Source of the DNA: Iphione sp. A-MEVVRFRX5
Taxonomy: Eukaryota
Assembly (NCBI GenBank): GCA_976226885.1
Contig: OZ320314.1
Coordinates: 61,256,001-61,320,000, forward strand
DNA: 64,000 bases
Reading direction: 5' to 3'
The notes beneath the pieces were generated by a model that was not told the DNA's origin, did not search any database, and worked only from the letters and a program-made list of their open reading frames with translations. Shown here one piece after another: positions 3,880-48,700 of the stretch (position 1 is the stretch's first letter; every line of letters begins with the position of its first letter). Both the position numbers and the translations under genes were made by a program.

Positions 3880-6800
3880 ATTGTGCCGACTGTGGAGTGC
3901 TCTTCGGCATCGGGTGTGTGGCCGCTCGACCTTGGGAGCCGAGCGGCGGTGCGCGCGGCTTCTTGGGCGATCCCCGGGGACTGTTGTAGGGCGAGTGGTA
4001 GAAGACCTCCTCCGAGAAGCTCACACTCTTCTTGTGGCGGTTGGCCTCAGCACAGTCTGAGCAAGAGTCGTCGGAGCTGTGAGACGTGAAGGACGCATTG
4101 GTGGCGCTGCCGCGGCTGCCACCACTATGGCAAGGGCAGGGCATCACCGGAATGGTGTCGGGTGAGTTGGCTACGGCGGCTGACGGCTTGCCGCCCCCAG
4201 CGCCGCCGCCGCTCATTCCCGCCTTGCCTGGAGCGCCGACGGTGGCGGCGGCGGGCCCATCGGGCGGCGAGGTGGCATCAAGCGGCAGGGCGGGGAGGTC
4301 TTGCTGGCTGAGCCGTTTCTTGACCTGTTCGCGGAGACTTTCCTGTAGGACCTCGGCCGGGAGCGAGGTGAAGCCGGCGGCGCCCGTGCTCAGTCCGTGG
4401 ACGCACTCTTGCTCGCAGGAGGAGGGCGCAATCAGCTGGTAACGCGTCTGGCCCTCCTGGCTGTACTTCATCACCGCCAGGTCGTGTGCGTCCGAGTAGG
4501 AGCGATGCTTGAAGAGATTCTTCCGCACCCGCCGCCGCTTCACCAGGCACGATTTCAGCGGCTTCTTGGGTAAACTGCCACCCTCATCACTGTCGCCGCA
4601 TCCCCCCGGCCCGCTGCCACCGCAGCCGCAGTCGTGGCGCGACTGACCGCGGTGTTGCGGCGAGGCGGCCAGCTGGACACTGATGAGGTGGTATGGCTTG
4701 TGAGTGGGCGACACCTGCAGGTACTCCACCTGCTTGACTGGTCGCGCCAACATCTTGTAAATAGGCTCGCTGTAGACAGGCACGGAGGAGATCATCTCGC
4801 CCTGCTGGCATTCTTCACACAGCATCCGCGGTGGTTTGGGAGGTGGCTTGCCTCCGCCGTGCTCGCCTGATGTTGTCTTCTTCAGGGGCGAGATGCTTCT
4901 TGGAGAGGTGCTCCTACGTGGAGGCTTGCTGGGTGATGCGGAGGCGGTCCTCCTAAGCTTGACAGTCTGCTCCTTGGGCGCCGACTGTTCGTGTGGGGCG
5001 GCGGTCGTGCCCCCTTTAGACCTGTACTCGGGGATAACTAAAGACATCGATTTGAGGCTGGTGGCGTTGTTGGTGTTGTCAGGGACGTCCGTGGCCGTAC
5101 TTGCGGTGCACTTCTCAACGTTCGACTGCCGTTCTAGCCTCTTTGTCATGACTTTACTTTGCTTGTTGGCCAGCTCGGCAAAACTGGTTATTTCTTTCAC
5201 TCTGCTGATGGCAGGATCCTGCATTTTGCTAGCACAGTTCTTGTCTCCCACCTTGGGCATGTTGAAGACATCGGGTCGGCTGGTGGAAGTCGACGACCCC
5301 GACGATTCGGACAGAGTCGACGAATCCGAGTTGCTCGGGCTGAAGAGGCCCAGGTCCGAGAAGTACTGCGCGTTGGTCTGCGGGCTATGGGACTGCGACG
5401 ACTCATAACACCCAGAATCAATGCCAGAAGAACTTGTGCTACAAACGCTAGTCGACGACGTCGAATCGGCGCGGCGGCGTGGGACGCTACTCGGGCGTCT
5501 GTCGTTCCCGATCGCCTTCGTTGCTGGCGCCGCCGCGGTCGTCGTGTCGCGACTGTTTGCGCGCCTCTCTTTGAAGAGCGCCTCGCGACCGATGGACATG
5601 TCAACGTGCCCGACGACGGTGTCGGCGCGCGCCATGCGCGGGTTATAGAGGGGCGTCGTCTTGCTGGCCTGTTCGAGGAGGCTGCTGATGCTCTGCGTCA
5701 TCCCCTTATTAAGGAAACTCAGGTCAGGTAGGGCCGAGTTGGAGAAGAGTAGGCTGCTTGTCAGTGATGGCTCGGTCTTCTTGAGTGGTTCGACCACCAG
5801 TGGAGGTGGGTTCTGGGTGGGCGTGGCCGCCTCCCTGGACGTCGTGTCCTGGCGTTTGCTGCTGGCAAGGTCTCTAAAGGTATGAAGCCTGGGCGACTCC
5901 TTGACCATGCTGGTCTGCTGGGGTGTCGACTGGTAGCGCGGGGCGCCTAGGTCACCTTTAGTGCTCTCGGTGCTGGAGCCGAGGGACGTCTGCAAGGACC
6001 GGCTGACTAATGCCTTGGTCGGAGCGCCGTCCTCGAAGGAGGTTTGTACCGAGCAGTCCCTGGCGTTGGGTGGGAACTGGCCGCAGAAGTCCCGGTTGTC
6101 CTTCCCGTACACTAAGCTTTGTGTCAGAATGAGGGAACCACACTGGGCGTCAGACTTGGGCCGCTCGTGGTAGCTGGTGTTGCAGGCGAAGCTGGTGAGT
6201 AGTTTGGTCTGGCAACCATCACTTCGCTGCAGTGCATTGCCGGAGGCGGCCGGTGGTCGGTCCGTCCTCTCGGGCGTGGAGGAATCGATGCTGTCGGCCG
6301 TCGACGTCCGCAGCGAGCTGTTCTTGCTGGTCAGGTCCTTCATGGTCATCCAGCTTGAAAGGCAGGGCACGCTGGGCGAGCGCTCCGACAGTGGCGGCGA
6401 CTGCTCCGATCCCACGGGTGACATGCTCCACGTGCCCGTCAGCATCTGCAGCGTCGTCGAGGACACCATGTTTTCCTCCATGCCCTCCTGCGAGCGTAGC
6501 CTCTGGAAGAGCTCAAAGAGCGACGTCGTCGATCGTCGGTCGCTGGCGCCTTGTTCGTTGCCACCCTCACTGCCCGCGTCCGTCCCCTCTTTCTCCGTCA
6601 CTACCTCGATATCCACCATCTTCTCCTCCGCGCCATCGCGGGGACTCGAGCCATCATCGCTCTCCGTCGCACTGCCAGAGCCAGTCCTCACGCGACTCCG
6701 CATATCCGGAAGACTCCGGCTGCGGCCGCTCTCGCGTTCGTCCTTATCGTCGGCACTGGGCCGCTCGCGTTGGCGAGTTTCGCGCAGACTGCGCCAAGTG

Positions 6801-44524: not shown

Positions 44525-45173
44525 TGTGGTGGGAGAGAAAGAGAGAGAGAGAGAGGGAGAGAGAGAGAGAGAGAGAGTGAGAGAGATGAGTAGTGACCAG
44601 GCTAACCACCTCTGTAAGGGTAATCCACACCGTCTTCTCAACGACTAGAAGCCGGGAGACTTGTTGGTATACCCGCACTCGCAACTGATCTAGGTCAGGG
44701 GTGCGTCTGCCAGGTTCTAACCCATGGCGGGTGAAAGCCTGCGAACACTGGGTGGGTTCTGCGCTTTCCACACACAAGCGCTCTTTGTATTAGATATGTG
44801 CGTCGGTGACAGGAGCACTACTAAGCGCACTTGTTATGAAAGTGTGGAGTGTGGCACAAAGGCCTTACAGTAGCACAAAAGGCTTGAGTTTAACCCACTG
44901 TATTTAAAAAGTAAAGGCAGTAATGTTCTCTTGAAGTTTCTTGCTTACAATGTATAAGGGTGTTGTTGTTTACAGCCTTTACAGGGTAGTTGGCTCTCCA
45001 ATTCAAGTGATTTAGTGAGATTTACAATGAATGCAGGTAAAGTGGCTCTCTTTACAATCAAATCAGGTCGAAACCGCTCTCTTTACAATAAATTCGGGGT
45101 AACTGACAATGAAATCAGGTTAGTGCTCTCTTATTCAGGGATTTATAGGAGAAAATCACCTGGAATTAGCGTA

Positions 45174-45176
<3 letters not shown>

Positions 45177-45206
<30 letters not shown>

Positions 45207-45789
45207 TCTGAACGTAATGGATGCTATGAATGCGTAGGCCAACCAGATGTGACACCTAGCCTCGTCTAAAAATTTTATTTTTACCTGTTATATCTGGCCT
45301 TACCTCACATTCATTCAGGAGAAGCTCTAGGGTATCTAAGGATCCTATATCCTCCCTTTACCCTCCATTCCACAATGGTCCTTGTGGATGTCTGGCCCCC
45401 AAACCAGACTCAACATGGGACTACCCATGTACGAACTGGGTCCTATCTAGTTTGATACACCCAGAGTGCCCAGGAACCACCAGGATCCTAGGGCACCAAA
45501 CCAAAGTTCACTGATCTTCAGTGACACCGTGTTTTAGATGCCTGAAGAGACACTAAGTCGAAACCGTGTGTGATTCTTTTAGTTTCTCTAAAAGATACAC
45601 AAACCAGACTTATAAAATACTCCATTTTATTCTGGGACTCCCATCACCATGGAGAGACTACCTCATCCATTGTGACATCATGTTGACATGGCAACGTCAC
45701 CACTTCTCCACTCCTGGCAGCCATCTTTATGGACTGACAGCCATAGCCACGGTTGCATCTTAAGGTTGGGTATTGCCTCGTTCTAAACA
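45177..45789 (-). mobile_element. 613-bp non-coding retroposed insertion nested in the DIRS 5' leader
   Basis: 16-bp direct repeats TGGAATTAGCGTAAGT at 45161-45176 and 45790-45805. T29 at 45177-45205 is a poly(A) tail on the minus strand. No credible ORF. Confidence 0.9.
45536..45760 (+). ncRNA. Type I hammerhead ribozyme with an enlarged (about 180 nt) loop 3
   Basis: Stem I AGATGC(45536-41)/GCATCT(45755-60). Core CTGAAGA (45542-48). Stem II GAC/GTC with loop ACTAA. GAAA (45560-63). Stem III ACCGTG(45563-68)/CACGGT(45748-53). Cleavage triplet GUU, predicted cut after 45754. Confidence 0.85.
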
Positions 45790-48700
45790 TGGAATTAGCG
45801 TAAGTAAACGACTTTGCTTAACAATAGCGTAGGCAGTTAGCGCACGTGGCTCGACTCTCGTTACACGCGAAAACCGTTAGAGTTCGTACGCTGCACACGT
45901 AAAAGTCGAATATTCGACCCGATAGCGTAAAAACACGTCAAAAACACGTCAAATACACGAAAAGGTTCGACTTTGCGTACGTTTAGATCGATTAGCGTAG
46001 CAATAGCGTATGTAAATGCGCAAGAAAAGGCAAAAAGTAACCGAAATGTACTTATCTGCGTGTGAGCCGCTCAAAGGGGTGACGCGAACTGAATGCGCAT
46101 GTGCGAGCTGCTTGGCGGGGACGCTATATCACCTGCTGCACTCTGGTGGAGAAGCAGCGAGGTAGAGTTTGGCGCTAGTACCTCTCTTCCCGCCCAAGTT
46201 GTACTGATGAAGACTGAAAACCTAGCTGTCCTCTAGAAATGTCATTTGATCAGAAATCACCTTTTCTCGAAAAACTAAAACACCAAATGGTTGAAATTCA
46301 AACGAATCTCGACTACGTATGAGTTGGGTTTTTGTTTGCTGCAGGAAGAAGTAATACTATGTATCAAGAGTCAAGTAGGGGCAAGGTGATATTCAGTAAC
46401 CACCTGGCTGCATGCAACTTCTACACAACCCGAAGGGTACAAGCCATTGGGTTCGGATGCTAAAAGACTATAGTCGAACACAAACATTCGGCTTCCTTTT
46501 AGGTTTTAGTTCAAAGTCTTTGTGGGAACTATCTAAGACAACGGATTAGTTCAGCTTCTCACATTTTACAGCGAAACTGGTATATATCTTACAAGTTTTC
46601 TCTTGAGAATGTAGAACATTAGTTGGTAACGGATCTTACTGACACTATGTTTTTATTCAATACACTCAGTGCTGATGGAATGTAAATGATGTGTTTAGTC
46701 TTCCGACATCTGCCAGAAATACATGCGTCCAGGTAATACACTACTGTAGCCAGAATAATTTTAACACAGTACATGTATAAGGCTGTTGGAATTGCCCTAA
46801 GGCTGCTCTGCGTGTTTAGAGATCAAAAGTTCAGCAGTTGAAGACCCGGCTTTTCTTACAAAAACGTAGAAGAAACACCTTAGATGGCACTGGAGAGTGT
46901 CAGCACAAAGAGTATTCTGGCCAGTTCTCCGCCCTGTAGCCAGAGGAAAGTCGCTTGGGCTTTCATGTGTTCATGTGGTGACCCCTCATTCTGCCGGCCA
47001 TGGTTGGATTGCCGCTCATGCATAGCCGCTCCCCGGAACTTTCCAGTGGTTGAGAACTCAACTATTCCCCTCCTACTCCTCTCATACTAAAAGTGAATAT
47101 ACATGTATATTATATGTCCTTCCTAAATGATAACCGGAACCTGAACCGTCACGACATGCCCGTGATTACTGAGTCACTACTGTTTACTACAGAAAGGAGC
47201 GTGTGGGAGAAGTATTTCTATGGGCACCAAGCAAGATGCCGCACGATGATTTATATAATCGTTAATTTGCTGAAATAGTAATTCTTGAATTTACTTAGAG
47301 CTTTTAGACGCTTTCACAGAATAATGATATTCAGGAATATACATGTAAGATAAGATGTTATTCGACGACTATTGCCCGAAATGCATCTTTATATACATAA
47401 ATCCCTATTTCACTTTGCTACTGCAGGTGAAAGACAAGTTACCAAGAAAATTATGACAAAAAGGTGACCATATTTATTTAATCAAAAACTTGGGGGAATA
47501 AAACTTAGGGGAGTATGACTGACTCATACTGGTCAAAGCGATATGGTAATACCAGAAATGAATGTTATATGTAAGAAGCTGTTCATATATAACTGGACAA
47601 AATATCCTGCTCCGTATGCGGGCATGGAGGTACCTCCTGCTGTTTCCTGATTTTAATTGATTCCATATGGTCTACAGCTTTCTCTTCACTATAGGCTCCT
47701 ATGGAAATCTGTGTCCAGGTGCGGACCTTTTCCATGTATCATGGAAAGAAATCCACACCTGTGTGCGGATGTGGAAAAATCTACCTATATGTGAACGCTA
47801 CAAGAGATATGGTAGAGCTGGGAGAAAATCCACCCCCGTGTGTGGACCTGGAACAGAAAAATCCGGTTATATGTGAACAACCCCTAAGTACAGAAACATG
47901 CATGTGGCGCCTGTGAGTTTGTTTCAAAAGCCCAGCATTCAAATCACATTGAGTTGACAATCACACCGAATACTGCGATGCCCTTTGCTTAGAAAGGAAA
48001 AGCACAGACTGTGTTCACTGCTCCATTTACGTGATGTGATCTTATAGATATATTCCTTGGGTATGACAGTAAACTGTAGAGCTCTGAATTGTCGGCACAC
48101 TGTGTCAAAGTTTCATTTAACCTAACATTCGTACTTTCCAGAGAGGTGTCATCTTCAATGAGCTGGGTGTGCGCCAACAAGAAAATTGCTTAAATTTATA
48201 CTCCTATGAAAGGAATATGACGCAGTACATTGATCCACATTCCGTCAAGTAGCTTCAGTAATTTTTCACAAGGCTGTGCTGGGCTAGAGCACTATACACA
48301 GGGTTCACCGACAAGCGTACGCGGACATAAGTGCAAAGACTACCAGTGGTTTCCACTCCTGGTCATTTCTGTGACTTATACTTTAAATAATTGTACAAAA
48401 CCATCTTCCATGTGAACTGTCTCTTTGTGTTGTTCCATGCGCCTCCGCAAGCCACGAACACGGCTTTAAAAGTAAGAAATGGAAGAATTTGTTAGGTTGT
48501 ATGATCTTGAAGGTTACTCTTCGAATAAACTTGAGGCCAACAACAGTGGAAGTGACTCAAAACACCCACTCATGCGCGTGATCCACTGACGACTATAAAA
48601 GTCTTTGTGCACGGCGATATTATAATCGTATATGATCTTGTCACTGTGACAAATATAACATTTAACAAAACAACGTCTCTAGCCAATCTTCTAAAAGTGA

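Follow-up and report, generated by a model that had tools for sequence, protein, structure and literature searches.

A Conserved Type I Hammerhead Motif with a Long, Structured Loop 3 in the Pseudo-LTR of a Penelope-Like Element from Iphione sp.

The window analyzed here (64,000 nt of Iphione sp. A-MEVVRFRX5, contig OZ320314.1, positions 61,256,001 to 61,320,000) contains what is probably a genuine type I hammerhead motif on the sense strand of the pseudo-LTR (pLTR) of a Penelope-like element (PLE). The two halves of the motif are joined by a 6-bp helix III, which closes a structured domain of about 180 nt. Comparison of the genome copies shows that the hammerhead of these pLTRs is complete and, judged from its pattern of substitution, selectively maintained. 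As an example the window copy is clean and young, its ribozyme region being identical to that of a copy with intact open reading frames (ORFs).

Architecture of the Hammerhead Motif

The initial annotation had proposed a complete type I hammerhead with an unusually large and structured loop 3. Direct reading of the plus strand of the window agreed with this at every position (Table 1), and the distal half, which had been placed about 180 nt downstream, is separated from the catalytic half by a loop of 179 nt. All 15 stem pairs of the window copy were Watson–Crick. The order of the elements on the plus strand gives the type I topology, with stem I open and loops 2 and 3 closed, and the core has the C3 U4 G5 A6 N7 G8 A9 ... 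G12 A13 A14 arrangement that type I motifs require. The cleavage triplet is GUU, which is a weaker triplet than GUC.

Table 1. Positions of the hammerhead elements and of the insertion that carries them, numbered from the first letter of the window.
Feature	Position	Strand	Remark
Target-site duplication, left copy, 15 bp TGGAATTAGCGTAAG	45161-45175	+	Identical to 45790-45804
T-run, 30 nt, at the 5' junction	45176-45205	+	Inside the duplication; absent from the source element
5'-truncated PLE copy: last 10 ORF2 codons, stop, whole 3' region (pseudo-LTR)	45206-45789	+	
ORF2 C-terminus remnant ...GLNVMDAMNA, with TAG stop at 45235-45237	45206-45237 (32 nt)	+	Maps to L034:8892-8923
Stem I, 5' strand AGAUGC	45536-45541	+	Pairs with 45755-45760
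Catalytic core C3-A9, CUGAAGA	45542-45548	+	Fixed except N7 (A, U or G; 27 variants)
Stem II GAC/GUC with G10.1-C11.1 pair, and loop 2 ACUAA	45549-45559	+	Column identity 98% in the family
Core G12-A13-A14 (GAA)	45560-45562	+	Column identity 99% in the family
Stem III, 5' strand ACCGUG, A15.1 first	45563-45568	+	Pairs with 45748-45753
Loop 3, 179 nt: two covarying hairpins, then near-invariant blocks	45569-45747	+	
Stem III, 3' strand CACGGU, U16.1 last	45748-45753	+	Pairs with 45563-45568
U17	45754	+	Predicted cut 45754/45755
Stem I, 3' strand GCAUCU	45755-45760	+	Pairs with 45536-45541
Stretch of 35 nt from the cut site to the constant 3' terminus ...CCUCGUUCUAAACA	45755-45789	+	Terminus shared by nearly all of 30 fetched copies
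Target-site duplication, right copy	45790-45804	+	Identical to 45161-45175

A descriptor allowing a long loop 3, one of the checks suggested with the annotation, recovered the window motif as the sole full motif; the catalytic half and the full motif were each unique in the window on either strand. In Markov-simulated windows of first-order composition, 0.003 catalytic halves were expected per 64 kb, and a matching distal half had a probability of 1.8e-5 of occurring within 400 nt. The joint expectation was about 6e-8 per window, so a chance match is excluded. The earlier judgment that the pairing is not random was thus sound, and its figure of 1e-5, which concerned the distal half alone, was conservative. 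For the window copy, the hammerhead-constrained fold had an energy of −66.7 kcal/mol compared with a minimum of −70.0 kcal/mol, a difference within 3.3 kcal/mol, and the minimum-free-energy fold of this single copy was not the hammerhead fold.

The suggested check with Rfam hammerhead models did not recover the motif. Neither the whole window at the gathering threshold nor the 45400-45900 interval at E ≤ 10 gave a hammerhead match, and the window motif did not reach the gathering threshold of RF00163 and its relatives. The likely reason is the 179-nt insert, which sits in a 45-position model. A genome-wide RF00163 search also gave no match, but its controls gave none either, which makes this search uninformative. 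Weak Rfam matches to an MS2-like hairpin, mir-503, a snoRNA, and Ysr35 were at chance level and were rejected.

Two further structural suggestions concerned the surroundings of stem I. An extension through ACC/GGU had been proposed, together with an internal loop of stem I as the docking site for loop 2. In 20 family members, pairing of the stem I flanks was no better than that of shuffled flanks, and the docking site found no comparative support.

Conservation and Covariation among Genome Copies

The 321 nt around the motif matched at least 40 places in the 1.18-Gb genome, with 75–100% identity. When the catalytic-half pattern was searched with any base allowed at N7 and as many as 2 mismatches, about 150 genome matches were obtained, compared with 0 for a reversed control pattern. 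Column identity and the RNAalifold consensus were computed on an alignment of 26 diverse copies. Column identity was 94–99% in the ribozyme and 46–80% in most of its surroundings; the ribozyme is the best-kept part of the repeat.

The two halves occurred in 27 distinct versions among 40 loci. Over these 27 variants N7 was A, U, or G, and position 17 (H17) was U in 19, A in 5, C in 3, and never G. The A15.1-U16.1 pair was present in 27 of 27 variants, and the C-G pair 15.2-16.2 was likewise invariant. Stem I showed the compensatory versions GAGUGC/GCACUC and UGAUGC/GCAUCA in other families, three compensatory pairs in L058, and an A-U to U-A change in L054. In stem III, G-C was replaced by A-U in five variants, and the L059 version, ACCACU/AGUGGU, combined a U-A to C-G change with a G-C to U-A change. 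The covariation that had been proposed as a check across genomic copies was therefore observed for both stems I and III. Wobble pairs (U·G and G·U) of stem III and of the loop 3 hairpins were compatible with the plus strand only. The RNAalifold consensus fold of the 26 sequences consisted of exactly stems I, II, and III. Stem II, with its G-C closing pair, was unchanging across the family apart from single-sided decay; because this 3-bp stem never varies, it has no covariation support. As read from the variants, the pattern of constraint is that of a hammerhead and not that of a generic conserved block.

A fortuitous match to the hammerhead consensus is refuted by these data. The consensus is short, and matches to it do arise in large databases (PMC3088659), but the very low joint expectation per window, the 150 genome copies against 0 controls, and the covarying stems all speak against such an origin here.

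A second small structure was seen outside the motif. The 6-bp hairpin CACUGA-UCU-UCAGUG, at 45509-45523 of the plus strand and 12 nt upstream of stem I, was conserved in nearly all copies, with a compensatory CACUAA/UUAGUG version in L014, L017, and L028. It could be part of the outer structure of the ribozyme.

Loop 3 Domain

In every family examined, helix III has 6 bp and closes an insert of 140–290 nt. The energy model predicted five hairpins in loop 3 of the window copy, the number that had been claimed for it. Comparison backed the first two hairpins well and the others partly. Those first two, at about 45569-45601 and 45604-45636, were found in almost every subfamily with differing sequences. 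The block at about 45704-45738 had a column identity of 91%, and the TGACATCA motif of loop 3 recurred in distant families. The near-invariance of the distal part of loop 3 suggests a sequence-specific role, for example as a promoter or in protein binding.

The near-invariant blocks at about 45670-45740 comprise TGACATCA, which is cAMP-response-element-like, palindromes of the GTCATGAC type, and GCCATCTT, which we take to resemble a YY1 site. From their sequence, these blocks may act in the DNA, as promoter elements of the pLTR, and not through RNA structure.

Host Element

The window segment 45203-45791 was 99.83% identical over 589 nt to L034:8889-9477 on another chromosome, which is the 3' end of an element copy whose ORF1 and ORF2 are intact and lie on the plus strand. 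The 840-aa ORF2 of L034 matched RVT_1 (E = 4.9e-9) and GIY-YIG (E = 8e-4; 20.0 bits, just under the Pfam cut-off of 22.6 bits). The nearest Atlas clusters to this protein were animal HTH_animal/DUF8422/RVT_1/GIY-YIG proteins. ORF2 also had a CX4CX2C motif upstream of GIY-YIG, a feature tied to the Neptune and Nematis clades (Craig et al., PMC8557442). By its predicted protein domains, the host element is a PLE with a C-terminal endonuclease (EN+). It had been stated earlier that the motif matched no family that could be named; the motif is in fact the pLTR hammerhead of a PLE, a family that the same annotation had cited as background. L034 ORF1 (4710-6407, 565 aa) gave no Pfam match, overlapped ORF2 by 7 nt, and was 58–77% identical to the ORF1 of L071.

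The complete layout was visible in L071, a 5.4-kb insertion that reads, in order, a 15-bp target-site duplication (TSD), T17, a 540-bp pLTR with ribozyme, ORF1, ORF2, a 540-bp pLTR with ribozyme, and the same TSD. Its two pLTRs were 98.9% identical, the motif was sense-oriented in both, and its ORF2 was 83% identical to that of L034. Direct repeats, 5' truncation, and target-site duplication, which characterize PLE pLTRs, were all found. At the 5' end of L034 no upstream pLTR was present, and no further copies of the start of L034 ORF1 were found.

The split layout was also kept in a PLE family whose endonuclease region is only 33% identical and whose loop is 288 nt long. Three distant motif families (L068-L070) had no recognizable PLE ORF remnant upstream; among the distant families only L067 had one.

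Tandem derivatives of the motif were observed as well. L072 (1848-2449; G000:C13, minus strand) contained 1.8 tandem copies of a 326-bp unit, each with a split hammerhead. Stem I of these units covaries as well (CUGAUGC/GCAGCAG), but in their core G8 is replaced by A, and by their structure the units are a decayed retrozyme-like or partial PLE tandem. In L063 (G000:C2:114126611-114127233) the distal half and about 110 nt were tandemly duplicated and U16.1 was replaced by G; from this arrangement L063 is another partial-tandem derivative.

The Window Copy and Its Insertion Polarity

At the window locus the element occurs once, as a dispersed copy. Since it has no ORF and is bounded by TGGAATTAGCGTAAG on both sides, it is a dead, 5'-truncated insertion, and its near-identity to an intact copy indicates that the insertion was recent. 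To judge from these features it is an inert fragment that merely carries an intact motif.

The terminal motif of the element is repeated internally, with CCTCGTCTAAAAA at 45260-45272 corresponding to CCTCGTTCTAAACA at the 3' terminus (45776-45789). The CCTCGTCTAAAAA copy just precedes an A5/T-rich tract. About 10 of the 30 copies start in this region (45260-45280), as does the upstream pLTR of the full-length copy; by this measure the pLTR boundary lies here, and 5' ends fall here with particular frequency. Farther on, the hairpin at 45411-45430 in the PLE 3' untranslated region scored 20.7 bits with the MS2 operator model, compared with a gathering threshold of 40; it was also present in L019. 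It is surely not an MS2 operator. The DNA flanking the insertion at 45805-46000 was unusually CpG-rich, with a recurring TAGCGTA / ACACGT(C/A)AAA motif, and may be another repeat.

T-runs of 9–30 nt stood between the left TSD and the 5' end in 11 of the 13 readable junctions of sense-oriented PLE copies. They were located at about 8210-8230 in L035, at about 7985-7997 in L036, and at 590-606 in L071, and further at the left junctions of L007, L008, L013, and L019. T-runs occurred at no fewer than five different truncation points and also before the full-length pLTR-ORF-pLTR copy. At the place of the window T-run, the intact copy L002 reads CCCATTGG. The right end was constant in the fetched copies, and the T-run end varied over at least five positions. 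A constant right end together with a varying left end indicates that copying was primed at the right end of plus-sense RNA. The T-run may stem from A residues added to the 3' end of the cDNA or from T residues added to the upstream DNA end. In the PLE literature searched, we found no description of untemplated or T-rich 5' junctions.

The insertion had previously been described as a poly(A)/TSD insertion. The 15-bp TSD was borne out, but the T-run could not be upheld as a minus-strand poly(A) tail, the same feature being present at 11 of the 13 junctions. If it were such a tail, the insertion would have been made by a LINE from a polyadenylated minus-strand RNA, either SINE-like or a processed antisense transcript, and the ribozyme would lie on the non-transcribed strand. 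This origin is very unlikely, although the left end does carry a pure 30-nt T-run inside the 15-bp duplication, T-rich tails elsewhere (e.g., in L009) look like decayed poly(A), and the minus strand has an AATAAA close to the shared left end, at about 45275. The constancy of the right end and the variability of the left end point instead to priming at the right end on plus-sense RNA, and a T-run also stands in front of the complete 5.4-kb pLTR-ORF1-ORF2-pLTR element. In L020 the T-run begins within the would-be AAUAAA, and junctions elsewhere have no such signal; the ends of the duplications are not T-rich, unlike L1-type targets. A SINE or a processed retrocopy would have a constant poly(A) end, with the tail placed after a polyadenylation signal, and variable 5' truncation at its other end; here the T-run end is the variable one and the opposite end is constant. 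An antisense, polyadenylated SINE-like retrocopy was rejected because T-runs occur at many truncation points and before a full-length element.

Proposed Mechanism and Implications

In transcripts of active copies, the hammerhead would fold as a single unit and self-cleave as a monomer. The cut is predicted to fall 35 nt before the 3' terminus of the element, and an RNA of unit length would be set free by cleavage in both pLTRs; in L071 the two cores are separated by 4,883 nt. Helix III would rely for its formation on a correctly folded loop 3 domain, and this domain may carry a second function, such as reverse transcriptase binding or promoter activity.

The two halves might instead be conserved relics, or might have another role, for instance as a long-range scaffold helix for reverse-transcriptase binding, with no useful rate of self-cleavage. 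Such a role, which we consider unlikely, would fit a stem II that is minimal and invariant, a position 17 that is predominantly U and not C, and loop 3 blocks that match the core in conservation. It would also agree with the weak in vitro activity of metazoan PLE hammerheads (PMC4209133) and with the in vitro insertion of the Anolis element without cleavage (PMC11167929). However, the catalytic nucleotides are all fixed across families that share little else, with N7 free and only G avoided at position 17, and a plain scaffold helix needs neither CUGANGA nor GAA. A self-cleaving hammerhead is the reading that we prefer.

Several PLE families in one animal genome, down to 33% protein identity, have kept the canonical core with a helix III that spans a large covarying domain. 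The split motif offers a PLE ribozyme for which possible activity as a monomer can be tested, and its layout physically ties ribozyme folding to the most conserved part of the pseudo-LTR. Short-loop descriptors and covariance models miss such ribozymes, which bears on published claims that hammerheads are missing from some PLE clades. Whether the arrangement is more general is a tentative matter. It is conceivable, although still doubtful, that the long-range helix III hammerhead is a general and overlooked PLE architecture, in which the halves clamp a 140–290-nt module that also serves the element, and in which cleavage is coupled to folding of the module or to ribonucleoprotein assembly. Split hammerheads may then be present in PLE clades and genomes for which canonical ones have been reported absent, because a short loop 3 is assumed by the standard descriptors and by the Rfam models.

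Comparison with Known Hammerheads

Hammerheads are known from both flanking repeats of PLEs (Cervera & de la Peña 2014, PMC4209133), and the full-length copy L071 likewise has a ribozyme in both repeats. As in the published PLE pLTR hammerheads (PMC4209133, PMC11167929), the motif is of type I, sense-oriented, placed in the repeats of an element with reverse transcriptase and GIY-YIG domains, and near the 3' terminus. One PLE hammerhead, that of Anolis, cleaves with protein assistance (Frangieh et al. 2024, PMC11167929). That element could insert in vitro without ribozyme cleavage, none of the RNA-seq reads terminated at the cleavage position, and reverse transcription started slightly downstream of the ribozyme (PMC11167929); the cut site of the window family, 35 nt before the constant 3' terminus, is comparable.

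The minimal hammerheads of metazoan PLEs have a helix III that is absent or of 1–2 bp with a palindromic loop, a helix II of 6–8 bp with an extra 5' nucleotide, and a helix I of 4–5 bp; they are thought to act as dimers and have low activity in vitro (PMC4209133). The window motif falls outside this definition. Its family has a helix III of 6 bp closing 140–290 nt, a helix II of 3 bp without the extra nucleotide, and a helix I of 6 bp. Unlike the presumed dimers, the window motif is predicted to be able to fold alone. A stable helix III is shared with the fungal and protist PLE hammerheads, in which helix III is large and which are active as monomers (PMC4209133); these, however, are contiguous and small, belong to endonuclease-lacking telomeric PLEs, and have not been described with a long structured insert. 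In Craig et al. (PMC8557442), only half-cores 35–50 nt apart are mentioned.

Type I motifs of metazoan retrozymes and satellites are compact, at about 60 nt, and have a helix III of 1–2 bp (Cervera & de la Peña 2020, PMC7229834), and short non-autonomous repeats with type I hammerheads are related to PLE pLTRs (bioRxiv 10.64898/2026.07.22.740005). The hammerheads of non-LTR retrozymes (PMC7229834) share the same core and a 6-bp helix I with the window motif. In those retrozymes the remaining repeat lies outside the open stem I, whereas here most of the 3' half of the repeat lies inside loop 3. Non-LTR retrozymes are moreover tandem repeats of 150–450 bp, each bearing a type I hammerhead and expressed as circular RNA, and the window copy is a single dispersed insertion.

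A discontinuous hammerhead was reportedly described by Martick and co-workers in 2008 (Martick et al. 2008) in the 3' UTR of rodent Clec2, with the substrate half first and the insert in the stem I loop. The resemblance to the present motif is that enzyme and substrate halves lie hundreds of nucleotides apart and make up one ribozyme. The Clec2 hammerhead has elsewhere been noted as having 'a very large loop' (PMC3088659). It belongs to an mRNA 3' UTR, whereas the present motif lies in a retrotransposon, begins with its catalytic half, and has its insert in loop 3.

In the literature on PLE and metazoan hammerheads, we found no description of a split layout with a long loop 3. The association of PLEs with hammerheads is known; what is new in the families compared here is a stable helix III that closes a structured insert of 140–290 nt across several PLE families.
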